Shown here piece by piece: positions 4,955-53,000 of a stretch of 64,000 nt of DNA. Within the stretch, counting starts at the first letter, position 1. Every line of letters starts with the position of its first letter. This DNA comes from Octopus sinensis (taxonomy: Eukaryota): NCBI RefSeq assembly GCF_006345805.1, contig NC_043019.1, positions 3,720,001-3,784,000 of the forward strand. Direction: 5' to 3'. Made by a program: the position numbers and the translations under genes. The notes under the pieces were generated by a model that worked only from the letters and a program-made list of their open reading frames with translations, made no database searches and was not told the DNA's origin.

Positions 4955-5089
4955 TGCCAGTCTATCCAAAGAAGTGTCTGGGAGGAGTCGTTTACTGGAG
5001 GACTTCCGAAATAACAGAATTCCAAATCTCCTCCTCAAAGATCTTGCCAATCATGTTGTAGAATTTTCACAAGATCAACATGGATCCCG
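4955..5089 (+). CDS. pum: pumilio exon: start of PUM-HD (R1' and R1)
   Basis: tttAG|T acceptor and TCCCG|GTAAGT donor. 135 bp, phase 2 to 2. Encodes [38 protein letters not shown]. Not in the ORF track. Confidence 0.96.
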
Positions 5090-5353
5090 GTAAGTAGTTG
5101 GGTTATTCAGTATTTAAAATTTCAATTTACTGTTCTTCTAGTAATTGAAATAAGTTCTATTTTTTCTGTAGAATGTTCTTTAGGAAAGTTGTAAATCTAC
5201 TGGAGTTCTATTCACTCTTGTCCAAATATAGGATAAAGTGTTAACAGTATTGAAACATTTTACATGTTTATAGAATTGTAAGGGGTTTGTGGTTAAAATT
5301 ACCATTTTTGCTGGTGTATAAGATATACTTTTTCATTTTTTAAAATGTATTAA

Positions 5354-5574: not shown

Positions 5575-6959
5575 TTAAAAAACAACCTGGCATCTAATGT
5601 GACTGCATTACATATGGGAGACCCAACTACCACAGGCCAAGGAGCTGGACAAGTATAAGTTCACTAGGAACAACAACAATAATAATAATATTCCTTTCTG
5701 CTATAGGCACAAAGCCTGAAATCTTACAGGAGGTGGGTAAAGTCAATTACATCGATCCCAGTATTCAATTGGTACTTAGTTTCAACCCAGAAAAGATGAA
5801 AGGGAAAGTTGTCCCAGGTGGCATTTGAACCCAGAACGTGAAGACATGAAATGCCGCTAAGCATTTCACTCGGTGTGCCAATGATTCTGCCAGCTTGCTG
5901 TGTTAATAATAATATTAGAATCATGCCATATTATCGCAGTCTGTTGGCACATGCTTACATAAAATTCCTTTGACTACATTGCAGATAAGTGAGGAGGCCA
6001 TATCACTTCCTTTTATCTCCTACCTACACATACATATAAACCAGTTCCGATATGTATCTTACATTGTTTAACGACTGTGTTACCTTTAAGAAGCATTTCT
6101 TTAAATTATATAAATAAAAATTCTCCTAGAAGGATGAAAAGAATGTTAAGCTTCCATCTGCTTGTCGGCTATTTGCCATATGTGGATGATAAAACCACAG
6201 CAGTGGTGCTCCACCCTGGTGGCCGATCACAATTGCACAAAACATTAAAGCCGACAATTCTCTTGACCAAAATAGATACAACTATACAGATGTTCTGAAA
6301 GATAAAATTGAAACCTGATACTTGAGTAACATAGTTTATATATGGTAAATTTATAGCTGTGTACTTTATTGTTCCAATATACTGTCAGAACATTGTTGTT
6401 ATGTGCACAGTTGCATATTTTTTCCTAAGGAGCCACTTGAAAAAAATTTTTTTTTCCAATTGGTGTATGATGAAATATGGACACTTAGTGTTTTGTCACG
6501 AAATAACTTTGTAAAATAGGGTTACATCTTGTATGCTAGCAAATGTGGTAAATCCTAAAGAAAACCATTTATTTTATTGCCCTGTGCGTAAGCGAAAGCA
6601 GGTTATTGTAGTCACTCATCTTTGTTTGTGTGTTTGCAAAATTATTGGGAAATGGCTGAATGGATTTCCCCCAAATTTTGCAGAAATACTCATTAGGTGA
6701 GTGACTCAAACTCATTAAATTTTGGTTTGATTATCTTCAAAACTGGCAGATGGGTGAATCCGAATGTTTTTTTTTCTTTGTTACATATACATAAACGATA
6801 TGCAGGGAAAATAACTCTTGATGTCATTTTGTTGAAATATGAATTCGTCTGGGAATATATTTATTAGATTAAATTTTATTTTATCCTTGTGTGAGTGCAG
6901 GGTATGCATCACCCCTCCAATGCCTTTTTTCTCTATTTTAATTTTTTTTTTTTTTCCAG

Positions 6960-7218
6960 ATTTATCCAACAAAAGCTGGAGAGAGCAACTCCACAAGAGA
7001 AAGCCATGGTCTTTAATGAGATCCTTTCTGCTGCTTATAGTTTAATGACAGATGTGTTTGGGAATTACGTTATTCAGAAGTTCTTTGAATTTGGTGTTAT
7101 TGAGCAGAAGCAAACATTGGCTCAACGTGTGCGTGGCCATGTTCTTTCTTTAGCACTGCAGATGTATGGCTGTCGGGTCATTCAAAAGGCTTTGGAGTCT
7201 ATTCCATCTGACATGCAG
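6960..7218 (+). CDS. pum: pumilio exon: PUF repeats R1-R3
   Basis: ttccAG|A acceptor and ATGCAG|GTTAGT donor. 259 bp, phase 2 to 0. Encodes [10 protein letters not shown]...[15 protein letters not shown]...[21 protein letters not shown]. Confidence 0.97.
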
Positions 7219-9052: not shown

Positions 9053-9147
9053 TTTTATAAGCAGAAAATGTTATTGTCTTTTCGCCTTCAGGTAGTTGTT
9101 GTGATGGTTGTTAATGTGGTTATTGATGTTTTCTGATTTTTATACAG

Positions 9148-9285
9148 GTTGAAATTGTAAAAGAATTAGATGGACATGTACTAAAGTGTGTCAAAGACCA
9201 GAATGGAAACCATGTTGTACAGAAATGTATCGAGTGTGTTGAACCAAATCATCTTCAGTTCATTATTGATGCTTTTAAAGGACAT
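9148..9285 (+). CDS. pum: pumilio exon: PUF repeat R4
   Basis: tacAG|GTT acceptor and CAT|GTAAGT donor. 138 bp, phase 0 to 0. Encodes [46 protein letters not shown]. Not in the ORF track. Confidence 0.97.
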
Positions 9286-10039
9286 GTAAGTTTTCTTTTC
9301 TGTATCTAAACCCTTTCATTACGATATTTCTGTTGAAATGCCTTGCCTTTGTTTCAATCAGTTCTGAAAATAATGAAGTTTTCAGTGAAATAACTTTACC
9401 ATTAACCCTTTAGCACTTAATCTAGCCCAAATATTCTACATGTTTTATGTTCAAACTGGCCAGATCTGCCCTTTTACTCATACCCTACAATGTCATTCTA
9501 AATATAAACAATCATCCCCTCATCGAAATCTTAGAGCTATAAGACTGACTGTGGGATTGCACCTAGAAAGTTACCCTCCCAGGCATAAGTCTGGGCAAAG
9601 GTTGTTTATGGAAGACCAGCTGTCACCCATGCATACCGGCCTCCCATCTCCACGCCACCAGTGTTATCCAAGGGAAGGCAAAGGGGCCAATACAGCTTGG
9701 CACCAGTGACGTCGCAACCCATTTCTACAGCTGAGTCAACTGGAGCAACGTGAAATAAAGTGTCTTGCTCAAGAACACAACACGCAGCCCGGTCTGGGAT
9801 TCGAACTCACAACCTTAAGATCGTAAGCTCGATGCTCTAACCACTGAGTCACATGCCTTCACAGAGCTATAAGATATAATAAGCATTACATTTGACAGAG
9901 AAATCTAAATGCTAAAGGGTTCTTTGGAGCATCGATCGATATGAAATTCTGATGGTAGTTTTTTTTAGATTACTTTCAAAGGTAAGTTTTTATCAGTGGC
10001 CAAGGGGCAATCTCTGGTAGTTTGGTATCAAACCAATTA

Positions 10040-11018: not shown

Positions 11019-11266
11019 GTGTTCAGTTTGTCTACACACCCGTATGGTTGCAGAGTGATCCAACGCATTCTTGAACACTGTACTGCAGAACAAACAACTC
11101 CCATTCTCGAGGAACTCCATGAACATACTGAAAGACTTGTTCAAGACCAGTATGGTAATTATGTTGTGCAGCATGTTTTGGAACATGGACGAGCTGAAGA
11201 CAAAAGTAAGATAGTCGGAGTAATCAGAGGAAAAGTACTTGATCTCAGCCAGCACAAATTTGCCAG
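11019..11266 (+). CDS. pum: pumilio exon: PUF repeats R5-R7
   Basis: tatAG|GTG acceptor and GCCAG|GTAAAT donor. 248 bp, phase 0 to 2. Encodes [19 protein letters not shown]...[14 protein letters not shown]...SQHKFA. Confidence 0.97.
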
Positions 11267-13220: not shown

Positions 13221-13282
13221 TATTAACTTCATTGTAATCTATTAGTTTGTCCAACTGACGTATTTTTATTTTCCATTTCTAG

Positions 13283-13366
13283 CAATGTGGTGGAGAAATG
13301 TGTGTCTCATTCCTCAAGACAAGAACGAGCATTTCTAATTGAGGAAGTTTGCTCAATGAATGATGG
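13283..13366 (+). CDS. pum: pumilio exon: end of R7 and start of R7-R8 loop
   Basis: ttctAG|C acceptor and GATGG|GTAAGT donor. 84 bp, phase 2 to 2. Encodes [29 protein letters not shown]. Confidence 0.96.
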
Positions 13367-13817
13367 GTAAGTTCGTTTTTTTTAAAAATTATCTTTAAAA
13401 TTTTTATTGGCTCAATTTGAAGGAAACCAACGGTGTTCTGCACAGGTCCTCCCAACATGGTCTGATTGGCATACTTTTAACCCTTCAGTGTTCAGTTTAC
13501 TTTGTCAAATGCAGTTGCTTATTTATTCACATAATTTTCAATTCATTATTGCATTATCTCGTGGCCTCAAGATCTCACTGATGTGACTGTTTAGTTTTAG
13601 AATTACATTGCTAGATATGTGAAAGGCCAGATCTGACCAATTTAACCCTTTTGTTACCAACCCGGCTGAAACCGGCTCTGGCTCTGCAGTACAAGTGTCT
13701 TGTTTTCATAAATTTTGAATTAAAATCTTCCACCAAACCTTAGTCACAAATACTGTTCCTAACACTAGCTTAAACCTTTTGTTACCAACCCGGCTAAAAC
13801 CATCTCTGGCTCTGTAG

Positions 13818-14007: not shown

Positions 14008-14996
14008 ATGTCTTGTTTTCATAAATTTTGAATTAAAATCTTGCACCAAACCTTAGTCACAATTTATGTTCCTAACACTAGCTGAATGATAACAAAGTTA
14101 TTCTACTAAATTCTTTGTTATATCTAAAATAATTGAGAGAAACACTGAAAATCTCAAAATAAATACAGTAATGAAAGGGTTAAACATACTTCCTTTATCC
14201 TGCTATTTGAATTGTCCCATAAATGGGCTGTTAACAATCTAAAAAAATACTGCTTTTTTGGTCAATATTTTAATTGATGGAAATATCAAAAACTTATTGG
14301 CTTCAGTATGTATGGTGAACTTTAAAAATCTAATTTCTAAAATTATTTTTTGTTTTTGTCTATTTGAGAATTACAAAACTATAATAGAAGACGCAAAAAA
14401 AAAATCCACTGTACTTCATCACATTACTTTAAATAGCATTGTCTTTTTACCTGTGCTCACCTGTAATTTGAGTAGTTTTCAAGTCAATTCTGTATTTGTG
14501 AGAGCTTTTCATTGTTCCAAACACAACTTAAATATATTAATAAATTTTAAAAATGTAAGTAGTTTTAGGAAACCAGTCTAAAATTTCAGTTTTAGAAAAC
14601 CATCTTTGTGTATTTTAATTTGAAATCCAATAATGAAAGGGTCTAATACTTGAAATTATATACTCTGGACTTTAATCCTGTAGCATTCAGATTTCTGTCA
14701 AATGTAATGCTTATTGTTGTGAAATACGGCCTCCTGACACCAACACAGCTCCAACAGCCAAGTCAGCGGCTGAGAAACCACAGCCCAGCCCCAGCAAGTC
14801 AACTTGCTCAGAGTGGAAATAGCAGTTGTACCTGGCTGGATGTCTTGCATGATGTGGTTCTTTGTTGCCCGGGTTCACTTTCACCGGTTCCATCACATCT
14901 TTTCTCTGACCATCTTTGTTGCCAACTTCACACTGACTGTAGTCCCTTGTTGCCTAAACGTAACATCAACTGTTCACATTGTCAAACTCGCATCAC

Positions 14997-15058
<62 letters not shown>

Positions 15059-15074
15059 ATATATATATATATTT

Positions 15075-15305
15075 TTCTTTACTACCCACAAGGGGCTAAA
15101 CATAGCGGAGACAAACAAACAAGGACAGACAAAGGGATTAAGTTGATTACATCGACCCAGTGCAAAACTGGTACTTTATTTATTGACCCCGAGAGGATGA
15201 AAGGCAAAGTCGACCTCGGTGGAATTTGAACTCAGAACGTAACGACAGATGAAATACCGCCAAGCATTTCGTCCGGTGTGCTAGCGATTCTACCAGCTCA
15301 CTGCC
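15075..15305 (-). mobile_element. SINE family B monomer
   Basis: Matches the family B consensus. Other monomers at ~5700-5900, 30215-30427, 32722-32950, 36840-37020, 38715-38950, 39453-39665 and 62962-63195. Confidence 0.85.
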
Positions 15306-15529
15306 TTATCACTAGTTTATATAGTACACCTCACAGTAAAAAGCATGCAAAAAGAAAACGTACAGCATGCTTTAAATCAGTCACATGATCTGTGAACGTT
15401 ATTTCTCGTTAGAATTAATTATTAATCCAGTATTGGTTTTCTTCTGTAGAACTAGAGAACTGTAGCAGTATCATTTGAATTTTATATTTCTCACAATATT
15501 TCTCCTTCATAATATTATTTATTCATATT

Positions 15530-15932
15530 GCCGTTGCCAGCGCCGCCCCGACTGGCCTCGTGCCGGTGGCACGTAAAAAGCACCATCCGTCCGTGGCCGT
15601 TTGCCAGCTTCGCCTGGCCCCCGTGCTGGTGGCACGTAAAAAGCACCATCCGTCCGTGGCCGTTTGCCAGCTTCGCCTGGCCCCCGTGCTGGTGGCACGT
15701 AAAAAGCACCATCTGTCCGTGGCCGTTTGCCAGCCCCGTCTGGCACCTGTGTCGGTGGCACGTAAAAAGCACCCACTACACTCACGGAGTGGTTGGCGTT
15801 AGGAAGGGCATCCAGCCGTAGAAACACTGCCAGATCAGACTGGGCCTGGTGCACCCTTCTGGCTTCCCAGACCCCAGTTGAACTGTCCAACCCATGCTAG
15901 CATGGAAAGCGGACGCTAAATGATGATGATTG
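15530..15932 (+). mobile_element. retroposon family C with 63-bp tandem 5' repeats
   Basis: Units start at 15560, 15623, 15686 and 15749, followed by the family C body and (GAT)n tail. Confidence 0.8.
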
Positions 15933-16163
15933 ATGTGAACTATTTGTGCATCACCTTGTGGATTTGAGATTTCAGTGATTGCTTATTTTTAAAATGACAT
16001 TGTTGGGTAGATGTGAGAGGCCAGAAGTGGGCCAGCTTGAAAATAAAACAGCTTGTTTGGGGCCGGGTGTGGTTGGTTTAAATGCTAAAGGGTTAATGAA
16101 CAATCTAGTAACTTATTGGTGTTTGTGTGTTGCTGTAATATAACTAATGTATTTTTCTGTTAG

Positions 16164-16407
16164 TCCCCACAGTGCCTTGTATACAATGATGAAGGACCAG
16201 TTTGCTAACTATGTTGTACAGAAGATGATTGATGTGGCAGAACCTGCTCAACGCAAGAGTCTAATGCACAAGATCCGTCCACACATTGCCACTTTGCGCA
16301 AGTACACTTATGGGAAACACATCTTGGCAAAACTGGAGAAGTTCTTCATGAAAACAAACTCGGACATGCCTCAAATGAACATGACACAGAATGGACCTCT
16401 TCCCTGA
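16164..16407 (+). CDS. pum: pumilio terminal coding exon: R8, R8' and stop
   Basis: gttAG|TCCCCAC acceptor, with an alternative in-frame AG giving exon start 16173. Encodes [23 protein letters not shown]...[23 protein letters not shown] at 16405-16407. Confidence 0.97.
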
Positions 16408-16716
16408 GGTGACTTTTTCACAGCTTAACCTATTTTAGGCAATGGATGTTTTTTTTTTTTTTTTCATTTTCTATTTTTTTTTTTAAAGATAAAATTTCCC
16501 CCCTCCCCCACCTCATTGTCATAAAAGGATAAGTTAGTTAAAATGCGGGCTGGTAGATTGGTTGATGACCTTGATACAGTGTTAAGAAATGTCTAATTCT
16601 AGAGATGATGGTGAATAGACATGGAGCCCTAAATCAAATTCTATTGTAGCTGCACACTTACACACACACACACACACACACATAAACATACATGCATGCA
16701 CACACACACACACATG

Positions 16717-16754
<38 letters not shown>

Positions 16755-19447
16755 TACAAGTTATAACTTCCCCCATCCCCTGTGCAGTACCTTGCACCAA
16801 TGTTTTGTATCTGGTTGTGGTATTATTCCTATATAATGATCACTTAAGTTGTTTTAGATATTGGGATCTACATGTAGCATTATCAAGTTCATTATCTTAT
16901 TTACTCCCCACCCCCTTTCCCCCTTTGTTCAACAGCCCCCTCCCCCGCCCCCCTCCTCCATGTCTTTTTTAGTATCGGTGTTATGTGTGTGTTACTGATT
17001 TGAAATCTCAGACAATTCATATTAAATTTGACAGTTTGTGAAACTTCCCATGTTGATGTCATGACAAATTGACTTTTAGTGAGGTAAATGTTTATTATTG
17101 AACTGAATCATTCTTTGTTGATGAAACTTGGAAATTTGTAGATTTTATGTGAACAAGCTGCCATATCCTTGAACACACCACACAAATTTCTCGTATATGT
17201 ATGTATATTTTATATATATATATATATATATGCATATAAAAAAAAATGCCAGTTTTAGATTCTGATATTGTGAACTGTTTCCATTGGTCACTTAAAGAGC
17301 AATTATTCAAATTATTGTAATACTTTTTCATATTTTATTTTAATTTTTTTTTTTTTTTGCCTAATATGCTTAACCTGTTTATTACCTGTTGTATGTCAAT
17401 ATATCTATATATGTATGAATATACATATGCAAAAAAAAAAAAGAAAAAATTCACCCTTAAAGAACAAAGGTAATAGTGAACTTTGACATTGCTACTTGTG
17501 TCTCCAATTTTGAACATTTTCTTTTTCTATCCTTCACCCTTACTGTTTATGCTGGGAAATCACTTAAATATTTCACCCTGAACTCCAAATTTAAACTTTA
17601 TTCTATGTATGTATTCACTGCTGTGCCCCCGACTTCGAACTGCCCCCACTTTAAACACATCCAGTTGACTGTTGGCATTAAATTTAGTCAAGTTAAGATT
17701 ATTATCTTCTAAAAAAAAATTTTTTTTTTTTTTTATAGACCAGACTCAAATTTTCTATTATCTCCCTGCTTAGTTACTGGTGTTGACTTGTATAAGCTAC
17801 CAAGTCACTAGATAGTTTGTCTCTACAATTTGGTATGTTCTTTTTTATATCATAGAACATGATTTACTCAATTTTGTATTTCTGGCCAACAGATCAGCCA
17901 GTGCTTTTTATTTCTGTTCCTCTCCAGAAATAATCCCGTTTCAGCATAGTAATTTGATTAAGGAATGGGATTAACCATTTCATTTGATTCAACATAAGTG
18001 CTTATTTAGAGGTTTTGATTCTTCAGTGAAGCTGTCTTAATTTTCTTTATCTAAGCTTTTTTTTTTTTTTAAATATATATATATATATATATATCTTTTA
18101 GTTTTAGTTTTCTCAAGATTTATCATCTTTCTCAAGTCTAGACAAACTTTGTCTATATGTCTTCCCTTTTTTTTTTTTGTTTTAACATGTAGTAACCATT
18201 TTCCCTCCTCTCTCTCTCTCTCTCTCTTAGTGTCCATTCTTCAATTTATTCTGATATTTGTTTCAAAAAACTCTTCAAAAGTCAGCTAATGCTGTGACTG
18301 AGTTCCATCTCTCTCAGTATGTGAAGTTTAGTTATGTTACTGTGTTCTAGAACCGAGTGCCAACTCATCTGCTTGCATTTCTCTCTGGAATCTCTGATCC
18401 TTCTCTCAATAGTTACCAATTTCAAGAGTTTCAGTGACTCTGCTCATCATTCCCCCCCAACCCTCTGCTACGATTAATTCCTGTCCAGCACTATTTGGCA
18501 CTTTTAAAAAAAAAGGTAGTTCATCTTTTCCATTTTTTTTTTTTTTCTTTCTTCTTAATTTCTAAACTGAACCATCCAAATTCTCCTCTGAATCATTTTA
18601 GTTAGTTTAGACAATCTTCCTCCAGTTGGTTGTAGCAGCAAAATTGTGAAATAAAAACTGTAAAGTGTAAATATGTGTGTACACAGGTTCCATCTGTATA
18701 TTCACATTTCTCGCTCTTTCATCCCACCACCATTCCACCATCATTATCTTTGTAAGTAATAAGGTGTCTCTCTCTGCTATCATTGCTCTGTGATGTGGTG
18801 TGGTGTATCTATCTATCTATGTATGTATGTGTGCGTGTGTATGCATGTTTTTTCTTTTTCCTCCTCACTCTCCTTCAGAATAGTGAGGCTGTTTGTCTTT
18901 CTGTCTACAAATATACACACACATGCTCACATACACACATGGTGACCTCCCCCACTGACAAGCAACAGGAGCGGTGGTCGTAGATGTGTTGTCACCGTCA
19001 CTGCTGTTCATCCATCACAGGTGGGTCCTTACCGCTGCCATTTGATGTGATAGTATTTTTTTCATTGATGAAGCTTTTTTGGAGTTGTAAGAGAAACATG
19101 AAAATTTGTAATCTTACGTGGAAAAGATGCCACGATTCTGTTGTAAATCAAGCTGGCATTTTGTTGGAACAAACTTTATTATAAATTTTAGATTTTTTTT
19201 TTATCCCCCCCTCCACTAAAATTAAATCCTTGAAAATGTTTTTAATTTAAACTTTCCAATAAAACCTTGTTGGCAGCGTGCCATTTTTTAGTTCTCGTGT
19301 TTGTCTCATCTAAAATGTTTTAAAGTAGGCAATCAATATGGTTTTGTTTTATATATACAATATAATTATATATATATATACATATATATGTATGTATATA
19401 TTTATTAAGGTGGTGCTCCAGCATGGCCGTAGTTAAATGACAAAAGA

Positions 19448-19483
<36 letters not shown>

Positions 19484-20005
19484 TTATATCTTAATTTTGT
19501 AATCATTTCCTTTGCTGTTGATCTTTGTCTAGTGTGTAGATATCTGGTAGTGATATATATATTCAAATTTTTTTTTTAAAACTAAGAACAATCTCAAAAC
19601 AAAAAAATATTTTACTCTTGAAGAGGTTTGTTTCGACAAAATGTTCTGGCCATTCTTCTTGTTTCTTTATGCATCTTGGCTGTACATTCTTGTAGGATTT
19701 GAAATTCTTGTATAGTTGTAATATAGCTGGCAACGGTATTGTACAGACTACTGGGTGCTATGTTTGTATCATGAAGTCTTAATTTTGATATCATTGTACA
19801 GTTTCTGCCATATATTTGTTGTCCGAACATTTCAGTAATCCATGTCTTCTGTCGGTGGTGTGTGTTTATATATATATATATATACATATATATAGTTGTA
19901 TGGGCTGTAGTGGCTATATTGGTCACCTGCATCCTACATCTACTGATATTTCCTGCTTTTGATCTGTAATTAAATCTTAACAAATCTATTTCTATTTTCT
20001 CTTCC

Positions 20006-20042
<37 letters not shown>

Positions 20043-21469
20043 CCCTCTCTATCCAAAAACTGCCACAAATATTCCTGTGCAGACGTGAAGTGTGAACGTA
20101 TGTGAAGCTTGTAAAGCCATCAAGCTAAATGCCTCTTAATTCTGGTTTAAGTTTTATACGTGCGCGTGTGTGTGTGTAGATGTAAGTATATGTACGCATA
20201 TATGTATGTACGCATGTTATATGTATGCTTGTGTATATGTGCGAATGTATGTACATGCGTATTTCTGCATGTGTATATGTGTGTACGTATATGTACTCCC
20301 ATGTATGTAGGTATATATATATATATGTATGTACGTACGTACGTAGGTAAGATATGTATATGCATGTAGGTGTGTGTGTATGTAGATATGTATGTATATA
20401 TAATCAGATTGTACATGTTATTTAATAGCCTTTTGATGGGAGACCTTCAACACCGTAACCCCCCAAGCCCTCTTTATAAATAGTTTATTGTACATTTATT
20501 CCGTTTCATGCTAAAAGAATGCATTCTTTGTAATTACTCTGTAAATAAGAATTAAAAACAAAATACTGTTTCAGTACCTATTTAACAATCCCCTATTTCT
20601 GTCACATGACTGATCGGTGAACAAGGAGAGGGAGTGACATACTTCTCTAGTTGACCTCAGACACTAACCACACTCGCTCACTCTTTCTCTCTCCATCCCT
20701 TTAGAACCTTCATACATATATCTCCAAATCCTTTTTGTAGAATGATGTAAATCTGTATAATAAAAAAAAACCATCACAATAATCTGACTCTGTCACCCTG
20801 TGTAATATATCTGTATACTATGTATATTTAAAGAAAACCAACAGGCAACCCATGTGTTGCCATAATCCCATATCAGTTCTGGATATCAGAACTAATTTTT
20901 TTTTTTTTAAATCTCTTTAAATTTAAAGACAAATACCAAACCTTGTGTAGATATATAAATAGACAGTTTTTGATCTTTATTTTGGTTCAATAACTCCTGT
21001 ATATAGAATGATTAAAAGACAAAAAAAATAAAAGTCCATACACATTAACTTTCTGCCACACATGCTGGTTACGTGCTGTCTGGATTAAAGGGCGATATAT
21101 ATCATGTTACATCATCTCCATCATTACTTATGTCAGTTTGACCTGAAGGTAACATTCCTATGTATAAAACAAAAAACACAACAAAAGGTGTAGAAGTTTG
21201 CGAGTGACTGAGTGAATGGATGGTTGGATGCTTGGCTTGGACGAGTGGGACGACATTTTAAGTGTAGCTGTGATCCAGATTTTTCCTTTTTAGCCATAAC
21301 GTTTCTGTTCGTTTTTGAAACTAGTTTTAAATTCTTCTCCTTATTTTGGGAGTTGATTGAAGATCTCGAAATAACAAAAAACTTTAATTCAATTGAATAT
21401 CAAATGCTGTATGTTATTTTATGTATTTTCTTTCTTTTTTTTTTATTTCCTCAAGTGTAGGTTCTGATA

Positions 21470-21860
21470 CTATATATGTATTTATATATATTATATATAT
21501 ATATTTGCATATATTTGCATATGTATTTATGTGCATGCATATGCATGCGTAGATGTGTATATGCGTTTATTTGCATATACTTGTGTATACATATATGTAT
21601 GTGTATGTACATGTGTATATGCATATATACATGTGTAAATGCATGTATATATATGCACATGTACATGTGTATATGCATATATATACATACATGTATATGC
21701 ATGTGTATATATATGCACATGTACATGTGTATATGCATATATATATATATATATATACATGTGTAAATGCGTGTATATATACACCTGTATATACACGTGT
21801 ATGTGCATATACGTATAGATGTGTATACACACTGTGTAGATTTTACTACTGTATATATCC
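21470..21860. repeat. degenerate alternating purine-pyrimidine (TA/TG/CA) minisatellite
   Basis: Recurrent catgtgtatatgcatatata units, with five TGTATATA matches (21644, 21704, 21772, 21786, 21850). Confidence 0.85.
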
Positions 21861-23012
21861 TAATGTAAGTGTTCATGGATGCAGGTATGATCAAGTGGTT
21901 AATGAGTTTACTTTGTGGTCATGCTCTGGGTTTGATCCCAGTGTGTGGCTTGTTGGAAGCAAGTAATGTTTTGCTATCGCCTCAAATCTTACAAATTGAG
22001 ATTGGGTCGACAAAACGGTGTAAAAGCCCGTCGGGTGGATTGTACCTGTGTTTTCAAAACGCTTGGCATTGTACAGATTCAGCCTGAGAAACAATGTCTG
22101 TGGAATACTCGGCCACTTCCTAACGAATTAATTTAAATGAGGCAGCAGTAGTTCAGTTGCTTGAACAGTGGTAATACTCATTGTGAAGGCCAGATTTCCA
22201 TCACATTATGCTAATGTCTCGGTTAATTGTAAATTGAAAATAAAAAGAAAAAAAAATCTAGGCATTTAAATTTTTTGTTTTTAAAACCAACTTTAAAATA
22301 CAGTTCTCTGCCAATACATATTGGTGAATTCCTCAGATAATCATATTATTTAATACCAAGCTATTATGACATTTTTTCCCCCCCACATAATTCCATATTT
22401 CATTATGTTAATATTTCACCAGTATCTAAGATATTTTTTCAGTTCATTTCCTTCCCCCATTTCTCTTTTCTTTAAGCTAAACTTTTAAAAAAAAAATTTT
22501 TTTTTTAAAAATAAGCAAAGGAAAAAGAAAAAAAATCTCCATTCTATTTATTAATTTTCTATGTTAACATATCAAAATATTCACCAAAACATTATATTCT
22601 TCAGTTAGCATCTGAAATTTGCTTTTGCTTTCACATTAAGTCATATGGAATTTGTTTCCGATTCCATGAACCGTTAGCTTTACTCTGTTATCTTAGCATT
22701 TCATCCAGGTCTCCTTACTCTCCGAACAGTCAAAACTCTTTTAAAATATTACACGCCTACCTTATTTATTTTTTCTCTACAACTCCTCTCCTTTTCTTCT
22801 CAGTTAAGTTATTTCATATTTCTGTTGACAATTTTAACTTTTTTTTTTTTTTGTAAATATGAATGCTTTGTCTTCCTGTAAGCAAACTTTAGGTAATGTT
22901 TATCAAATGTGTGTAAGTTATGTATGTATGTATGTATGTATATGTCTGTGTGTGTATGAACGTATGTGCTTGTATATTTTCTCCCAAAAGGTGTTTTGAT
23001 TTGATGGCTTTT

Positions 23013-23108
23013 AAGTGTGTATAAATCTAATCTTTTTGAAGTGTGTATAAAATCCAATTTTTTTTGAGTATGTATAAATCAAACTTTTTTGAGTGTGTAT
23101 AAATTCAA
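23013..23108 (+). repeat. four degenerate 25-28 bp tandem units (agtgtgtataaat..aa.tttttg)
   Basis: Units start at about 23013, 23039, 23067 and 23092. Confidence 0.8.
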
Positions 23109-24130
23109 CCGACTAACATAATTGGTTTTACTGTTTTTGTTCAACTGTAAAATTGAACTATTTTTATTGCTATAGACTTTGTAATTTTTTGTACTGTAAA
23201 AAGGATATTTACAAAAAATAAAAACAAAAAAAACCCCTTGTCCTCCTCCTTCTCCTCCTCAACATAGTTCTTATAAATAATAAAAAAAAAAAAAAGGAGT
23301 TATTTTTCTTGTGGAGAATTTTAAGTAACATTTCAGTATGTGCAGCCCTACCCCCTAAAGACAAAAAAAAAAAAAGTTTAAAAAAAAATATAATGGTAAA
23401 TAAATAAATGGTTAAGAAATATGTCACTGACATTTTATTTGTCCTTGCTCTCTCCATTTTTCATACCTAGGATTTTGGAATTTTGTACAAGTCTATTGTA
23501 TAGTTTAAATGTTATGGGACTGGCCAAATTTATTGATCTAAGGGGGGGAGGGGAGAGTGCTGCTGCAGCATGTGTGTTTTGTTAGCTTTTTATTCATTTT
23601 TTTTCTTTACTATACCTACATGTTTGGTTTTGGACAATATCCACTGCTCCAATCTTAGATTTTTTTTTTTTTTTACTATTATTATTATTGTTATTATTAT
23701 TATTATTACTACTACTACTAATAATAAATATTAAAAACTTGGAATTCCTTGCTCTCAGATATTTCGTTTGTGCCATGCAAGTTACGTAGTTTTAACTTTT
23801 TTGTCATATTTCTCTCCGTTAAAACAAACTTTTTTTGTTTTTTTTTTAAAATTCTTTTAAGGAGGGAAGGAATAAAAACTTGTTTTGTTCCCTGTTGTGT
23901 TAATCGTCGCTAGTTTTATTAAAAATTACTTAGGATAGGAACGTGTCTCTGTTGTCTGTGATTCTTGTTAGTTTTAAATATTTCCAAAAAAAAAAAAACC
24001 AACCAAAAAAAATAAAGCTGATTGCTCAGTGGGGTAAATATAAAATATAAACTATTTAGTTCTGCATATCTAGGACTTGCTTGGCATTATTCATAACTCA
24101 GGTTACCTACTCTTTATGTATGTGTGTATA

Positions 24131-24352
24131 TGTATATATATATATATATATATATACATTTATATATATATGTGTGTATATATACATTTATGTGTGTATA
24201 TATACATTTGTGTGTATATATATACATTTGTGTGTATATATATACATGTGTGTATATATACATGTGTGTATATATACATGTGTGTATATATACATGTGTG
24301 TGTATATGTGTATATATACATATGTGTGTATATATATGTGTATATGTATATA
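24131..24352 (+). promoter_or_regulatory. cluster of 11 Pumilio response element matches (TGTATATA)
   Basis: Manual count at 24131, 24175, 24195, 24213, 24233, 24251, 24267, 24283, 24309, 24327 and 24345, inside a ~16-20 bp TG/TA minisatellite. Confidence 0.5.
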
Positions 24353-25559
24353 ACACATACGCTGTCTCTTGCTGGTTCCCTCTCCCAAACATTTCCAAAA
24401 TCTATCTAATTCTAGTTTTCCTTTCACTTGTGTCTTAGATGTCTGTGAAGGGCAACTGTTTTCGGTAGTTGTTGGCATTAGTGAAATTATTTTAGTGTTT
24501 CAGACTTATTATTACTGGGGCAGTACTTTCTTCTCTCCACAATTCTATCGAGGGATTTCTTTGGTAATTCTCTATAATAACCTGGAGAGTTTCTACAAGA
24601 ACTCCCATCCTTACCCTCCACCCCCCCACTGTATATTTTGTATGTGCATGGCGGCACCACCGAAATACCCAGTATTTCAATCCAAAGCAACAGGAATTTC
24701 GTTGAACTTTCATCTACTAACTTGGTGGTCTTAGACACTTTTCTCTTTCTCTCTCTCTCTCTCTCTCTTAGTTGTGGGTGTGTCTCTCAGTTTTTTTTTT
24801 TTTTTTTAAAGAATTTCTCTCCAGCTATACTTTTAATTTGGGACCAGTTCTCTCTCTTATCCAGGAAAACTAACCACATCCCTTGTCAGACGAAGCTGAT
24901 TCAGCTAAGACAACTGCCCCGTTCCACCTCCCTTGTTTTCCTCAATTTTCCTTTTTCTCCCAAGATTTTTCCATTTCTCTAAATATTGGGCATTTCAATA
25001 TTTGGTTCCTTTAGCTTTCTCTCCTATTTTCTTGCCTCTCTACAGCATTTAATGTATCCCCATTCCCTCTCTTTAGCCTCTAATATTCTCTCTCTCTGCT
25101 CCCCTTTCTCAGTGTGTAGTATTCTCTCTCTCCCTCTCTCCCTCTCACACCTGTTCTTTTGCACGTGTGCTCAATTCTCTCGTTAGCATTTACTGTTCTT
25201 CAGTAGCATGTGCTCTTCTCCCTCAAGTTGTGACATTTTCAGTCTCCAAACTCCCCCACCCCACCCCAATCTTCTCTCTTATACAATGGTCTCTCACTAG
25301 AAAGTATGATTGGAACATCCTCCCATATTATATTGTTGCTATTAGTAACCACATTGTGGCTGTCTACGTCTAGTTAGTGATGTATCCCCAAACTTTATCC
25401 GTGAACCTTCTTCCTCTCGTTTTCTGTCTTTTACACTATTTTCTTTGATCAGGAATTTTTCTGCCGCTTTGTTTTATAAAAAAAAAACAAAGCGAAACCC
25501 CACCCCCCAAATTTCTTCCAGCTATTTTCCAATATTGAAATATGTTGTGAAGATACATA

Positions 25560-26260
25560 TGTATATATGTATATCTATATATGTATATATACACGTACAT
25601 ATATCTGTGTATATATATTTGTGTATGTATTTGTATATATATGTATATGTGCATATATGATGTATATCTGTGCACGAATGTGAATTAATGCGCTTGCAAG
25701 CGTGTTTTGTGTTTGTATTTATGCCTCTGTATCCGTGTTTGTATGAATGCATTTAAAAGTATATGCAATTGTTTACGTATGTGTGTATATGCGTTTAAAA
25801 GTGTGAATGAATTTAAGTGCATACGTTTATATTTGTAGCTATTTATGTATATACTAGTGTATGTGCGAGTGTATATACTTGTGAACAAGTATGTGTGTGT
25901 TTGTGTACATACATATACCTGCACACACAGACATGTATATATGTATATAGACATATGTACATATATAGTTGTATAGTTAAATATACACATTTGTATACAT
26001 GTAGGCGCATGTATGTGGATGTGTATGTATGTAGACATGTATATATTGTGTATGTCTGGACTTGTATGTGTTTGTAGTGTGTATGACAGCATCTATATAT
26101 AGATGTGTGTATATGGGCATGTATGTATATATGTATAAACATGTATATAGGTGTATGTGCATATATGTATATAGGCATACGTGTGTATATGTATATAGGC
26201 ATATGTATATATAGGCATGTGTGTATATATACATATATGTATATAAGCATATGTATATAA
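25560..26260 (+). promoter_or_regulatory. second PRE-rich TG/TA tract (at least 18 TGTA[TC]ATA)
   Basis: Manual count in a degenerate RY tract on the sense strand. Confidence 0.4.
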
Positions 26261-27083
26261 GTATGTATATAGGTATGTATATAGGGATATATGTAAAATA
26301 TTTGTATGTATGTAGGCATATGTATGTGTATGTTAGTATGTGGTTGTCTATACATATATATGTATGTATCTCGCTCTTCTTGTATAAGATTTTATTAGGA
26401 ACTGGTTTTCATTCTGTCCAAAGTCAAATAACATTTGTAACTATTTCCCCCCCTCTTCAGTTTTAATGAAATGTTTCTTTAGCTTCAAGACAATTCCCTG
26501 ATCTAAATAAAAATTCCACTCATTTTACTCCTCACGCCACACTAATTTCCCCCTTCCCCTGCTTTCTCTCTCGCATGTGGGGAGAGAAACGGTTTAACAT
26601 GGATTTTATTTTAAACATTTTGTACAATATGTAATGGATTCTAGCCTTTTTGTATATTTGCCCCTTTTCCCCATTGTATATTTATCAAGGTTTTTTTTCT
26701 TAAAAAAAAAAGAAAACAAAAAACAATAACAAACAAGCAAAAAACTATTTATCAATCATCATTTTCTAATTGTACAAAGAATGTATCCATAGCTCTCACT
26801 GTGTTTGGATTAATTCTTAGCAAGTCCTGCCATGGTCACGGCTTGCTGTCCACTTTGCTTCCTTTAGGCTCTTCTCTCTGTTGTTTTGGCCAAAAATCAA
26901 GGGTCTAGAATTTTTTTCTTAATTTTTTAACTTTTTTTTTTTTTTTTTGTAGTTACCTGTAAATGAGTTGTGAAGTACAGCTTTTTTGTTAATTGTACAT
27001 GTTGTATTATACAAGATTTGTGTATTATTGTAATGTTTGTAGCTATATATAAATATATAAATATATATATATATATCCCCCCA

Positions 27084-27089
27084 AATAAA
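27084..27089 (+). terminator. candidate distal polyadenylation signal
   Basis: AATAAA with a downstream GU/U-rich tract, just before SINE density jumps at ~27200. Confidence 0.35.
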
Positions 27090-27197
27090 GTTGCTGGTAT
27101 GTGAACTGCTAGATTTTTGTGTTTTCTTTTGATTATAAAAATTGCTGTTGTCAAAACTGTTTTTTTAATTTTTTTTTTTATATATATCAATTGTTGA

Positions 27198-27762
27198 CTT
27201 ATTTGTGTTTACGTCCCCGTCACTTAGCGGTTCGGCAAAAGAGACCGATAGAATAAGTACTGGGCTTACAAAAGAATAAGTCCCGGGGTCAAATGACTGA
27301 AACGAGTAAAGGAGTAATAGATTTGAAATCGGCAGGGATACAGACGGAGCACATACTCTCTTTACTCTTCTACTTGTTTCAGTCATTTGACTGCGGCCAT
27401 GCTGGAGCACCGCCTTTACTCGAGCAAATCGACCCTGGGACTTATTCTTTGTAAGCCCAGTACTTACCCTATCGGTCTCTTTTTGCCGAACCGCTAAGTG
27501 ACGGGGACGTAAACACACCAGCATCGGTTGTCAAGCAATGCTAGGGGGGCAGACACAAACACAAACACACACACATATATATACACACACACATATATAC
27601 GATGGGCTTCTTTCAGTTTCTGTCTACCAAATCCACTCACAAGGCATTGGTCGGCCCTGGGCTATAGCAGAAGATACTTGCCCAAGATGCCATGCAGTGG
27701 GACTAAACCCGGAACCATGTGGTTGGTAAGCAAGCTACTTACCACATAGCCACTCCTGCGCC
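27198..27762. mobile_element. SINE A 3' fragment (+) abutting full SINE A (-)
   Basis: 27198-27320 is a + strand 3' half. 27355-27762 is a full minus copy. Confidence 0.85.
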
Positions 27763-27896
27763 TATGTGTAGACTCATTTGCTAATTGCCATGTGATGTTT
27801 CATTCTGTTGCAACCAGGATTCCAATTTGAAACCTCAATCACGTCTGTAGTGCACTTCCTGCTGTATTGGTACCTACTACAACTTACTCGGTATAC

Positions 27897-28299
27897 CGTT
27901 TTACTCTTTTACTTGTTTCAGTCGTGTGACTGTGGCCATGCTGGAGCACTGCCTTTAGTCAAACAAATCGACCCCCCCCTCCCCCCAGGACTTACTCTTT
28001 GTAAGCCTAGTACTTATTCTATTGGTCTCTTTTGCCAAACCGCTAAGTTATGGGGACGTAAACACACTAGCATCTGTTGTCAAGCGATGTTGGGGGTGGG
28101 GGACAAACACAAACATACACACACACATACATATATGGCATGTTAAAGCACCCACTACACTCTCGGAGTGGTTGGCGTTAGGAAACTCTGCCAGATCAAG
28201 ACCGGAGCCTGGTGCAGCCATCTGGTTCGCCAGCCCTCACTCAAACCGTCCAACACATGCTAGCATGGTAATCGGACGTTAAACGATGATGATGATGAT

Positions 28300-28330
<31 letters not shown>

Positions 28331-28411
28331 ATGTATATATATATGTATATATGTATGTATATGTATATATATATGTATATGTATATATATATGTATATAT
28401 ATATATGTATG

Positions 28412-28443
<32 letters not shown>

Positions 28444-28757
28444 TGTATATATATGTATGTATGTATATGTATGTATATATATGTATATGTATGTATATGT
28501 ATGTATATATATGTATATATATGTATATGTATGTATATGTATGTATATATATATGTATATATATGTATATATATATATATATGTATATATATAATGTGTG
28601 TGTGTGTGCGACGGTCTTCTTTCAGTTTCCGGCTAGCAAATCCACACACAGGTCTTTGGTCGGCCCGACACTTGCCCAAGGTGCCACGCAGTGGGACTGA
28701 TTCTGGAACCATGTGGTTGGTATCCAAGCTACTTACCATACAGCCATTCCTGCGCCT
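27897..28757 (-). mobile_element. SINE A interrupted in its internal slot by a family C insertion and ~300 bp of (TATG/TA)n
   Basis: 3' half at 27897-28135, family C at 28136-28300, microsatellite at 28305-28610 and 5' half at 28610-28757. Confidence 0.75.
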
Positions 28758-33075: not shown

Positions 33076-35434
33076 CAGTGTTTCCCAACCTTTTTTCCCG
33101 GCGCCCCACGTTTTCATAGCAAAAGTTTTTACGCCCCACCTTTTCCCATGTCCACTCACATTTACAAGTACATGTGGGCCTACTTACAATTGAAAAAAAA
33201 TCAAAAATTAAAAAATTGTATTCAAAATACAAAAAATAGTTTGAGAATTGAAACAACAGGCACTGAAAGTGCATAACACCCAATAAATCGATAAAATTAT
33301 TACGATTTCTCATGTTTTTAAAAAATGTCAATTTATAAAGAATAAAGAAACACGTTTTTTCAGTTCAATTATTTGACGGTCAGCTCGACTAATTTGTGAG
33401 AACCCTGTGCCTGATGCATACAGCACAAGTTTTTAATTTGAGGAGACAACTTTGTTAATTTCAGTCGTAAATCGCCACGTTTTGTAATCTCAAGCCGGTT
33501 TCTCTTGGCTTCGAGCAAATTATCAACTGCACTAAAACCACATTCGACCAAATAAGACGAAGGGAAAGGAATCAGTAGCTCTCTCGCTGATGTAGAAATT
33601 TTAGGATATTTTCTTTCAACCTCGTCATATAGCCACATCTTTGTACCTTTCAATTTAAACAAAGTCTTCACTGATTCATCATGTTGTAATTCTGATAACT
33701 CTTCTTGGTATTGGATTGTAGCATCAGAAACGTTAATCAGAAGCGGTTGAGTTAACCAAGAAGGAAAATTCATTGCCTTTAAATCGCAAAATCTGTCATT
33801 GAAATCCTTTATCAAGATATTTAAATGATCAATAATTACAATGCCAGCATCATTCGTTATTTCACATTTACTCAACCAGTAAAGTTCACTGAAATTTCTT
33901 TTTCCATAATTCGAGAGCTGTAATAAATCCAAAAATCTTTGCTTTTGCATCAATAAGTGTCATGTTTGCACCTTGAAGTTGTTTATTCAAGTTTCCAAGT
34001 TTCTCAAATATGTCTGTCAAATAACTGACAAATGCTTTTCCATCCGTTGTTGACAGCAATTTCATTTCACATTTATCACTAAGAAAGTCGTTAATCTGAT
34101 CAAATAATTCCATGAACCTCTTTAAGCAGTTTCCACTTGATAGCCATCTTACTTCTGTATGAAGCAATAATCGAACATGTTCGGCACTTTGATTTATACA
34201 AAACTGCTTAAAAAGACGTTCAGATTTAGAATTTCTTTTAATGCTGTTGACACACTTGATCACACTTTGAAGAATCTTGTTAAGAACAGGGGACAATTTC
34301 TTGGTAACCAAGTTTTCTCGGTGTATTACACAATGGACAGTCAACATGTTTGGATTTTCATCCTTCATCATTTTTAAGCATCCCGTATTCTTGCCCATCA
34401 TGGCAGGTGCATCGTCTGCCGCACATGCCAGTAAGTTTTCCTTTGGTATTTTGTTTGCATCCAAATAATGTTTGATTTTGATGTAAATATCATTTGCAGT
34501 TGTGGTGGTTTCAAACGATTCGCAGAACAACATCTCTTCCTGAAACTCCTCGTGGTCAATATACCTCACATAAGTCAATAACAGAGCCTCACTGTCCCGG
34601 ATTGTGGATTCGTCCATTTGTAATGAAAACTTACGCAATTTTAATTTCTCAATGAGCTGGCTTTCAACATCTTGCCCCATTTCATCTATTCTGTTCGAGA
34701 CAGTGTTATTACTGAGTGGCATAGTCCTGATATCTCCATCATCTTTTTGTAATACAGTTTTTAAGAATATTGAGATAGCAGGTTTAATCAGTTGCTCTCC
34801 AATAGTGTGATTCTTTCCATGTTTTGCTATAAGCAAGGAGATTTCGTAGCTGGCTTCAAGGGCACGAGTATGAGGCGCTTGTTTTGCATGAAATAGTGAA
34901 GTGAGTTTTGTTCGGTTTTTAAATTTTTCTTTCAATGATTTGAAGTATTCCAAATCTAAATTAGAATTATTAGGATGTCTTACCTTTAAGTGCGCTTCCA
35001 GCCTACCTGCCTTCATTGACTCATTGCTCATCGTCTGATTACATAATAAGCAAAACGGTTTACGCTCATCATGCTCATCAGGAATGAATCCAAACTTCAA
35101 AAACTCCACCGCGTATTGACGAGTCTTCTTCTTGTTTGGTTTGCTCATTTTCAATAGGGCTAACAAAAGACTAATTGAGGCAAACTAATTGAGGCAATTG
35201 ATTGGCTTATCTGAATAGTAAGTTTATTGCTCAGTGCGGGATCTTCTTTGTCTCGCTGGGGTGCGAGAGTTTCCGATGTGGAGGCTTCAAAGGAAAGACG
35301 GAATCTAAGGTTGTGCCCGCGATGACCGCTCGTTATGTACAAATATTTTCACAGCCCACGTCTATGCCCCGCGCCCCACCTGAATTTTCTCAGGCCCCAC
35401 CAGTGGGGCGTACGCCCCACCTTGGGAATCACTG
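33076..35434 (-). mobile_element. hAT superfamily, Buster/Charlie-type DNA transposon, 2359 bp
   Basis: TIRs CAGTGTTTCCCAA / CAGTGATTCCCAA. Perfect 8-bp TSD CTATAAAG (33068-33075 and 35435-35442) with central TA. Subterminal CGCCCCAC repeats. Confidence 0.95.
33369..35148 (-). pseudogene. Buster-type transposase (~590 aa) broken by one frameshift near 33900
   Basis: ATG at 35148. BED-like CxxC...H...H, FSLQMDEST, DDAPAM, HCVIH, HTEVRWLS, and in the second frame PFPSSYLVECGFS and RGDLRLKLT. ORFs 33886-35166 and 33369-33953 overlap. Confidence 0.92.
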
Positions 35435-44455: not shown

Positions 44456-46639
44456 TCAGAACAATAGGAGAAAGCTTTTCAAATAAAAATGAGGCGTTTA
44501 GTAACAGACCGTCGTAAGCGGCACAACTTAAAAACCGAGAAAAACGCAGTCAGTTTCGCGACTTTCGGAATGCGATATCTCAGCGAGGAGTGAAGTTAAG
44601 AAGCTGGTTTTGGTCTTAAAATGACCGTGAAGGCCGCTAATCATTTCACTTATGTGCAATTATTTATTTTTAGTGGCTGTGTGGTAAGTAGTTTGCTAAC
44701 CAACCACATAGTTCCGGGTTCAGTCCCACTGCGTGGCATCTTGGGCAAGTGTCTTCTGCTATAGCCCCGGGCCGACCAATGCCTTGTGAGTGGATTTGGT
44801 AGACGGAAACTGAAAGAAGCCTGTCGTATATATGTATATATATATATATAAATATATATGTATGTATATATGTATGTATGTATGTGTGTGTATATGTTTG
44901 TGTGGCTGTGTTTGTCCCCCCAACATCGCTTGTGTGTTTACGTCCCCGTAACTTAGCGGTTCGGCAAAAGAGACCGATAGAATAAGTACTAGGCTTACAA
45001 AGAATAAGTCCTGGGGTCGATTTGCTCGACTAAAGGCGGTGCTCCAGCATGGTCGCAGTCAAATGACTGAAACAAGTAAAAGAGTAAAAGAGTATCTAAA
45101 AGATGAAACAATGACTGCATCTTTCTCATTTTATAGAAGGTATCGGTAGTATGAAACGGTGTATCGCATTGCATATTTCAGCCATAGTATCTAGGGAAAA
45201 CATACAAAGACCCACCGAAGGTATTGCTTGAGTTTTAATATATCAAGGTAAGTATCTTTAAGAGGTAAGTAAGACAAGAGAGTAAAATAATAGCCCATTA
45301 TCGTTACGATGGTAAGGAGAAATATTAGAAAACTAGCACTATGACCCGGCGTTGCTGGGTCATAGTGCTAGTGCATGCGTATACAGTTGCATGCGTGCGC
45401 ACATGCACGCGAGGACTGTCCAAATCTCCGACCAATCACATACAGCTTGCTGGCATTCAATTGGCGTATCAAGTTTCGGGCATTTTGATTGGGTTTTGGA
45501 TAGAAAATTCACAAAAAAGTCACTTCTATTGATTTTTTAATGGCTTTGCGGAGTGACTGGGGAAATGTAAAGATGTGCACGACCACCCTTGGACGGTTTT
45601 GAATGACCATAGAAAGTGCGAGACCTCTAACTGAAAAATTGTGGATTTGTATAAAGGACACGCACACAGACATTTTGCCGTTTATATATATAGAGATAAA
45701 TACATATGCATGCATACATACATACATACATACATACATCATACATACATACATACATACATACATCATACATACATGCATTCATGGTGGCTGCCCTCTC
45801 GTTATCGAGTATGGCCATTGCACGAAGCTTAATCAATGTTGTTATCGTGTAATGCCTGTGCATGAAGATTTTTTTTTTAAAGTGAGGAAAGGCTGTGCAC
45901 TGAGTCAATCCCACTCACTAAGCAACAGCAGCCATAATCCGAAAAGAAGAACAAGTCAACATCATCGGTAACCACTGAGCCGCAGGTTTTATGTCGGAGT
46001 TATCCCAGTTACCTGAGTTACCTTCTCCTAGAAGGATGCCCTAACAAAGGCTAGGGGTCCTTCACTCCCAATGGTTTAACCTCGCGATCGGGTATTCAGC
46101 CCGATTATTTCTATGTCCCCGCGCATGATACAGCCTTAAGACATTTATTGGATGGCCGTTGACTCTCAAGAGTTCCTCCGCCCTTTGACGGGTTTTGTTT
46201 TTCATCTCGCAGGGTGTCCAATAAACACCCTCCTCACCAAACAAGCTTGGTGGGGTTGCCAGTTTAGTCGCCGACGACCCGACCATGCAACAGGTTGTAT
46301 GGGTTACATGTTACCAGTAGCTCTCGAAAGTGACCTGACATACATACATAGATACATACATACATACATACATACATACATGCATAATAACACTATCCTG
46401 ATTACAAGTTCAGGTTTATACCAGTAATTATTTGGGTACTGGAATATGTAATACTGTCCCTAAATACCAATCTTGAGAAATTAGGCTTTGCAAAATCAGA
46501 ATGGAGAAAGCTAACTTGAAGACTACAGATCCAAACTTTGTGGATCTTAAAATGTCTTTTGAAGCCTCCGTTAGATTTGCAGACCTTCTGGCATACACTG
46601 CATTCAAAGGTGTGTACAGTCATATAGGCAGAATATATG

Positions 46640-47902: not shown

Positions 47903-47934
<32 letters not shown>

Positions 47935-49090: not shown

Positions 49091-49122
<32 letters not shown>

Positions 49123-52228: not shown

Positions 52229-52287
<59 letters not shown>

Positions 52288-52673: not shown

Positions 52674-52706
<33 letters not shown>

Positions 52707-52739
52707 TATATATATATATATATATATATACATATATTT

Positions 52740-52865: not shown

Positions 52866-53000
52866 GAATATACTCTATCACCTACACACTAAATGGTATA
52901 CACAGGTGCTTACAATTATCAAGTATTCACCCTGAATTTTTGTACCCAACTTACATATACATATATATAGACATATATATACATATATATGCATACATAC

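Follow-up and report, generated by a model that had tools for sequence, protein, structure and literature searches.

Putative long 3′ UTR of an octopus pumilio gene: probable core Pumilio sites and microsatellite-derived motif arrays

Known Pumilio target transcripts and the octopus locus

The Drosophila pumilio 3′ untranslated region (UTR) carries abundant, deeply conserved Pumilio sites (PMC5707805), and human PUM2 is subject to negative autoregulation through its own 3′ UTR (bioRxiv 10.1101/033423). Two further transcripts, the mammalian PUM decoy and condensate scaffold NORAD and that of the human gene PLCXD1, are rich in Pumilio response elements (PREs). NORAD is a non-coding, abundant RNA that resists PUM-mediated decay and has 17 PREs in total, which belong to twelve conserved ~300-nt repeat units with stem-loops and U-rich motifs, and PLCXD1 has 18 PREs, mostly within transposable elements (bioRxiv 10.1101/033423). 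Here we examine a 64-kb stretch of Octopus sinensis DNA (the window, an exact match to chromosome record CM016881.1; window coordinate = L003 coordinate minus 74398) that contains a pumilio gene followed by a PRE-rich 3′ flank. An earlier note, made from the letters of the window, had described this flank as a possible NORAD-like sponge or feedback module within the pumilio transcript itself.

We think it rather likely that the flank is a long 3′ UTR with a conserved poly(A) site, in which a small, old autoregulatory core is accompanied by many PREs that are by-products of microsatellites. The distal poly(A) site would have been conserved since the octopus-cuttlefish split, and Pumilio most likely would bind the core PREs of its own mRNA and repress it via deadenylation, by analogy with flies and mammals. 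Repeats of the (TG)n(TA)n type would have expanded in the genus Octopus within the UTR just as in the surrounding non-UTR DNA. The resulting arrays would have been tolerated rather than built, with PREs largely hidden in predicted AU/GU hairpins and probably little regulated Pumilio binding.

Like the autoregulated pumilio UTRs (Drosophila pum and human PUM1/PUM2), the octopus locus has sense UGUANAUA sites downstream of the stop codon, in excess of both chance and the antisense strand and conserved across lineages. Like the fly neural 3′ UTR extensions (PMC5707805), the UTR is also far longer than the genome norm. The locus differs from the fly and mammalian pumilio UTRs in that the putative length of ~10.7 kb, compared with a genome median of ~0.37 kb (PMC9699675), is extreme for an invertebrate, and in that most of the octopus matches are microsatellite-derived and not individually conserved. 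By its core sites, the octopus locus would be a cephalopod addition to the class of autoregulated pumilio 3′ UTRs. Pumilio self-regulation via sites in the pumilio 3′ UTR, already known from flies and mammals, would thereby extend to cephalopods. The exceptional length and deep conservation of the putative cephalopod pumilio 3′ UTR, with its conserved distal poly(A) site, is the more interesting result.

Extent and ends of the pumilio 3′ UTR

With the human PUM1 PUF domain as a tblastn query, we detected six plus-strand exons (4980-5090, ~6955-7218, 9145-9288, 11019-11264, ~13278-13367 and 16165-16407) that together encode a complete Pumilio homology domain (PUM-HD) of eight PUF repeats, with 78-85% identity to human PUM1. 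Over the 331 PUF-domain residues scored, the protein shows 100% identity with O. sinensis pumilio homolog 2 (XP_036368446), which contains PF00806 and PF22493. This sequence identity marks the gene as pumilio, PUM2-like, in agreement with the earlier note. Since the stop codon lies at 16405-16407, the PRE-rich interval singled out in that note (18666-26260) begins 2.3 kb and finishes 9.9 kb downstream of it on the sense strand. As had been proposed, these PREs very probably belong to the pumilio 3′ region: the sequence from 16408 to ~27110, with three PRE arrays (A to C) within it, very probably is one long 3′ UTR, as judged from collinearity with cuttlefish up to a common poly(A) signal and from a strong depletion of interspersed repeats. 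The gene end and the two putative poly(A) regions are as follows.

16165-16407, plus strand: last coding exon, with PUF repeat 8, the C-terminal tail and the TGA stop at 16405-16407 (tblastn; matching the O. sinensis and O. vulgaris loci exactly)
16408-27110, plus strand: putative 3′ UTR of the distal isoform, ~10.7 kb (cuttlefish collinearity, interspersed-repeat depletion, sense-frame stops, UGUA strand asymmetry)
18632-18720, plus strand: conserved block with AATAAA at 18650 (ATTAAA in cuttlefish), the PRE UGUAAAUA at 18666 and a GU-rich run (82% identity, cuttlefish flank 1983-2079)
26630-27132, plus strand: terminal conserved block with AATAAA at 27085-27090 and a putative GU-rich downstream element at ~27113-27132 (cuttlefish alignment)

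Over 10 kb past each stop codon, the locus was compared with its orthologues in O. bimaculoides, O. vulgaris and the cuttlefish Acanthosepion pharaonis. Runs of N in the O. bimaculoides 3′ flank (L001 39553-41710 and 45726-46569) conceal the orthologues of window ~17.5-19.5 and ~23.3-24.0 kb. Wherever sequence can be assessed, the flank is collinear across the three Octopus species, with 98.5% identity between O. sinensis and O. vulgaris and, in alignable blocks, 93.9% identity to O. bimaculoides. For the introns, just 20-88% of which are alignable with O. bimaculoides, identity is 86-93%; this yardstick is identity in local alignment blocks, global intron alignment being misleading due to large indels. 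Between octopus and cuttlefish, Blast revealed collinear blocks at 18625-18731, 19551-19869, 20731-21032, 22848-22899, 23136-23221 and 26615-27127. Further out, the available Lingula contig stops 112 nt past the gene, and ENA contig L007 (ERZ21867824 ctg112846l, 14135-18461) offers ~1.8 kb of 3′ flank. This contig, filed under a metagenome, is eukaryotic host DNA inside that record, and carries a cephalopod-like pumilio gene with introns far shorter than those of octopus.

The last collinear block closes with AAATAAAGTTGCTGGTATGTGA in both octopus (AATAAA at 27085) and cuttlefish (flank 7899), and the alignment gave no similarity directly beyond it. This conservation suggests that a distal poly(A) site lies near 27105-27115, which would place all three arrays inside the 3′ UTR. 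The octopus 3′ UTR would then measure ~10.7 kb and that of cuttlefish ~7.9 kb, both ending at a common poly(A) site. Past the distal AATAAA, the octopus sequence continues with a GU-rich run and, from about 27200, SINE-like (short interspersed nuclear element-like) inverted repeats. Interspersed repeats make up 3.8% of 16408-27110, whereas the figures for the introns, the 10 kb upstream and the 37 kb downstream are 30%, 47% and 30%, respectively, and the depletion is unbroken between the stop codon and 27.1 kb; tandem repeats are not depleted (26% of the UTR, 10% of the introns). In unique sequence, UGUA occurs at 12.1/kb on the sense and 4.9/kb on the antisense strand of the UTR, compared with 4.5 and 4.3 in intergenic DNA.

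The SINE-like copies, some of them inverted, lie at 27200-28260 and 28600-28700. They begin right past the putative poly(A) site and mark a sharp border where the repeat-poor UTR gives way to intergenic DNA rich in repeats; relatives of the element also are found in the pumilio introns (for example, at ~3000 and ~15200).

The conserved block at 18632-18720 may be an intermediate poly(A) site, in which case shorter isoforms lacking nearly all PREs likely exist too. If the 18650 site is used, only the long isoforms would be open to Pumilio feedback, the short ones being nearly PRE-free. Taken further, most pumilio mRNA might end proximally, for example after the AAUAAA at 18650, with the distal blocks acting as DNA regulatory elements or belonging to a separate non-coding RNA and the arrays lying outside the mature mRNA, an arrangement that we consider unlikely. 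The median octopus 3′ UTR is ~350-380 nt (PMC9699675), cuttlefish shares the poly(A)-signal-like block at 18650, after which a GU-rich run follows, and decapodiform transcript contigs reach just 291-955 nt beyond the stop, although these contig ends probably are assembly breaks at A- or T-runs. Enhancers are hard to reconcile with a conserved series that stops precisely at a sense AAUAAA and GU-rich element in both lineages. The asymmetry of PREs and UGUA, which is sense-specific in both lineages, and the continuous transposon depletion from the stop codon to 27.1 kb also speak against a proximal end for most pumilio mRNA.

Core sites in unique sequence

The putative autoregulatory core consists of about eight isolated sense PREs, at 18666, 19535, 20540, 20946, 20998, 21850, 22852 and 25904. 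In the repeat-masked UTR, six sense and no antisense PREs were found, with 1.1 expected per strand. Masking with Tandem Repeats Finder (TRF) was imperfect in that it left degenerate upstream repeats unmasked and hid the unique PREs at 18666 and 22852; when these two sites, which sit in conserved blocks, are included, the ratio becomes eight sense to no antisense. The three Octopus species agree exactly at six PREs (19535, 20540, 20946, 20998, 21850 and 22852), and three sites (18666, 20998 and 22852) are aligned with cuttlefish PREs. The cuttlefish UTR itself has seven sense and no antisense PREs and a UGUA ratio of 91:36; its upstream sequence and gene body (66.5 kb) are symmetric (PREs 14:16, UGUA 391:372). 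Fold prediction suggests that the core sites are loosely structured, with unpaired probabilities of 0.2-0.58 (0.54 for the PRE at 18666). This conserved, sense-only core fits one half of the reading put forward in the earlier note, PUM autoregulation; the other half, a built array module, is not supported. The core sites and conserved blocks between the two putative poly(A) sites are listed here.

19535-19542, plus strand: isolated PRE UGUAGAUA, the same in three Octopus species (three-species comparison)
19655-19845, plus strand: non-coding block without a PRE, the best-conserved octopus/cuttlefish stretch (~190 nt; Blast E 2e-48, alignment, stops in every sense frame)
20540-20547, plus strand: isolated PRE UGUAAAUA, the same in three Octopus species, predicted unpaired probability 0.58 (comparison and folding)
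20946-21005, plus strand: two isolated PREs, UGUAGAUA at 20946 (conserved in Octopus) and UGUAUAUA at 20998 (aligned to cuttlefish flank 3684)
22848-22899, plus strand: conserved block with the PRE UGUAAAUA at 22852, paired in the alignment to a cuttlefish PRE at flank 5400 (Blast and alignment)
23136-23221, plus strand: conserved non-coding block, 83% identity with cuttlefish (Blast and alignment)

The PRE-free block at 19655-19845 is a candidate target of microRNAs or of another RNA-binding protein; a scan of 15-30 kb against Rfam matched no family. We also considered whether the conserved blocks are alternative coding exons and rejected this explanation, since the major blocks b1, b2, b6 and b8 are interrupted by stop codons in every sense frame of both species. 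Elsewhere in the UTR, a 26-nt tandem repeat at 23009-23108 comprises ~3.7 copies of TTTTGAAGTGTGTATAAATCAAATTT, each with the near-PRE UGUAUAAA and not the canonical UGUANAUA.

Microsatellite arrays and other features of the window

The sense strand of 18666-26260 contains 45 TGTANATA (PRE motif UGUANAUA), 37 of them exact TGTATATA (UGUAUAUA), which bears out the tally of at least 40 PREs in the earlier note; the 23 TGTANATA on the antisense strand were absent from that count, and two further sense PREs (26264 and 26276) lie beyond the interval. All 11 sense TGTATATA reported for 24131-24352 are present, with gaps of 16-26 nt following an initial gap of 44 nt, and are accompanied by nine on the antisense strand. 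The five sense sites reported for 21644-21857 likewise were recovered, with four antisense sites beside them. At least 18 sites had been given for 25560-26260, a number that holds for the degenerate motif (19 TGTANATA) but not for exact TGTATATA (17). Each of the isolated sites was found, together with three that had gone unlisted (19535, 20381 and 20946).

Relative to dinucleotide-shuffled sequence, the motif is strongly enriched, with 137 occurrences on the two strands of the window compared with 36.8 +/- 6.1 expected. Against the local background, however, the UTR total is not special: 4.4/kb sense and 2.2/kb antisense in the UTR compare with 4.0 and 3.7 in the 10 kb upstream of the gene. 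The introns (71:33) likewise show a sense bias of roughly 2:1, as does the intergenic DNA downstream (44:21). The caution that TA/TG repeats create PRE matches by chance, voiced at the outset, accounts for most of the PRE count. Microsatellites are very abundant in the window, and ~37 array PREs lie in degenerate (TG)n(TA)n compound microsatellites. Wherever a TG-to-TA junction runs on into two further TA repeats, the resulting TG-TA-TA-TA spells UGUAUAUA, and the array PREs can accordingly be read as by-products of these repeats. The three UTR arrays and an intergenic array used as a control have the following properties.

21470-21860, plus strand: array A, a degenerate TG/TA/CA compound microsatellite with five sense and six antisense PREs, mostly base-paired by prediction (TRF, folding)
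24127-24352, plus strand: array B, ~18-nt units (UG)n UAUAUAUACA with 11 sense and nine antisense PREs and near-continuous predicted hairpins (repeat analysis, folding)
25553-26345, plus strand: array C (C1-C3), TG/TA-rich cryptically simple sequence and (TATGTATA/TAGGCA)n with 21 sense and three antisense PREs, mostly base-paired by prediction (repeat analysis, folding)
28300-28593, no strand assigned: intergenic control array (TATGTATATA)n with 13 TGTATATA (28332-28582, ~250 nt), past the putative poly(A) site and SINE-like repeats (TRF, folding)

Array B is nearly strand-symmetric because its unit, TGTATATATACA, equals its own reverse complement, and the strand bias of the UTR comes chiefly from array C. 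A transposon behind array C (25668-26118) was considered and rejected, since its other "copies" show just low-complexity similarity to TG/TA and CATA arrays. Outside the UTR, arrays of the same kind as A to C lie upstream of the gene as well as within introns and intergenic DNA and yield 1.6-6.2 PREs per 100 nt of array, compared with 1.9-4.9 in the UTR. As regards conservation, the arrays are orthologous in position in the three Octopus species, but their sense PRE counts (sinensis/vulgaris/bimaculoides) are labile, for example in B (A 5/7/6, B 11/17/3, C1 4/4/4, C2 7/8/6). Multi-PRE arrays are missing from the cuttlefish 3′ UTR, which has just plain (TG)20(TA)34 and (GT)13(TA)29 tracts, the former in the interval matching array A.

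A different explanation is that the arrays are a selected multivalent Pumilio platform, providing stronger negative feedback, NORAD-like sequestration or condensate nucleation, with array length tuning PUM dosage. The putative UTR totals 47 sense PREs and 56 non-overlapping UGURUAUA, as against 17 in NORAD (bioRxiv 10.1101/033423), and shares with NORAD the clustering of many PREs on one RNA, such that multivalent PUM binding is conceivable. In further support of selection, the arrays sit in an otherwise transposon-free UTR, all three Octopus species keep them at orthologous positions, the counts of A, C1 and C2 being similar, array C is sense-biased (21:3), and array density is ~7-fold above that of the 128 kb around the UTR (three arrays in 10.7 kb compared with ~5 in 128 kb elsewhere; a rough post hoc Poisson estimate, p about 0.01). 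These points fall short of demonstrating selection, and we judge such a platform improbable. Non-UTR DNA has the same arrays, equally productive of PREs, one of them directly beyond the putative poly(A) site; the sense bias of 2:1 extends across the locus, and arrays A and B are almost strand-symmetric. The cuttlefish lacks arrays though its UTR is conserved, counts change rapidly among sister species, the PREs are predicted to be paired, and the role of a sponge demands high RNA abundance.

The octopus arrays differ from NORAD in that their units are species-variable microsatellite motifs of 2-20 nt, predicted to be paired and located in an mRNA UTR, with identical arrays in non-transcribed DNA; the conserved ~300-nt units and accessory motifs of NORAD are absent. 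Two NORAD hallmarks were examined, conserved complex repeat units and, by prediction, accessible PREs, and the arrays have neither. A NORAD-like built module, as proposed in the earlier note, is not supported given the equal PRE yield of non-UTR arrays, the lack of arrays in cuttlefish, the variation among species, a strand bias that is not UTR-specific and the predicted pairing of PREs. As in PLCXD1, the high PRE count of the octopus arrays comes from repetitive DNA and not from site-by-site selection, with the differences that the source is microsatellites rather than transposons and that the host gene is pumilio itself. The arrays are closer to incidental repeat-derived PRE clusters of the PLCXD1 kind than to NORAD. 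That ordinary microsatellites can produce a PRE count more than twice that of NORAD is a caution for motif counting in repeat-rich genomes.

Pumilio binds single-stranded RNA. As RNA, all of the arrays are predicted to fold into near-continuous AU/GU hairpins with about 75% of nucleotides paired, and thermodynamic prediction gives an unpaired probability of 0-0.15 for most array PREs. For array B, the minimum free energy is -126.7 kcal/mol (z -7.3) and the PRE unpaired probability is about 0-0.2. Given that Pumilio needs single-stranded RNA, many array sites may be occluded. This strong predicted structure raises the further idea that the arrays act as double-stranded RNA, their AU/GU hairpins being ADAR substrates or structural elements and the PREs incidental or editing-gated. 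Octopus A-to-I editing does concentrate in introns and hairpin-bearing 3′ UTRs (PMC9699675). The intergenic array at 28300-28593 folds identically to the UTR arrays, so the structure follows repeat composition, and the arrays are not conserved beyond Octopus; we regard a function as double-stranded RNA as highly unlikely.

Several observations weigh against our preferred account of an old core surrounded by by-product PREs. Within Octopus, PRE conservation is weak evidence, since chance retention of an 8-mer is ~56% at ~7% divergence, and the identity values (93.9% for the flank, 86-93% for intron blocks) suggest that substitution-level constraint is weak. Given the octopus median, a 3′ UTR of 10.7 kb would be an extreme outlier, and most transcripts may instead end at proximal poly(A) sites, for example that at 18650. 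With regard to the arrays, the ~7-fold excess may reflect some preference for the UTR, and the PRE counts of A, C1 and C2 are similar in all three Octopus species. The AU/GU helix predictions are uncertain in vivo. Accessible array sites, even as a minority, would outnumber the core sites, and any accessible fraction in the long isoform would be expected to bind Pumilio regardless of its origin.

A more far-reaching idea is that microsatellite expansion in Octopus turned an ancient pumilio UTR into a length-polymorphic multivalent platform, a cis sponge or feedback amplifier in which repeat length sets the number of effective sites and hairpins or A-to-I editing gate them, giving a fast-evolving dial of PUM dosage in the nervous system. 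We hold this to be distinctly improbable. If the arrays do bind Pumilio, they would provide a natural example in which the dosage of an RNA-binding protein is tuned by variation in repeat length; no finding here requires such binding.

Additional features were noted elsewhere in the window. At 46400-54900, ~8 kb of (CATA/ACAT)n-type arrays lie on the plus strand, in the orientation opposite to the UGUA-type repeats of the pumilio UTR; the earlier description of the downstream arrays as ACAT-type on this strand is correct for 46-55 kb, where GC skew reaches -0.96. An assembly gap of 100 N occupies 61118-61217. On the minus strand, 33369-35166 contains two adjacent long open reading frames of 426 and 194 aa. 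A Pfam search of these frames (33.4-35.2 kb) returned no domain; they may resemble hAT-type transposase-derived proteins. In the last pumilio intron, 15519-15890 is a tandem repeat whose period is roughly 70-75 nt, one frame of which reads repeated GAFYVPPARGPGEAGKRPRTD, and which probably is a minisatellite or transposon fragment.

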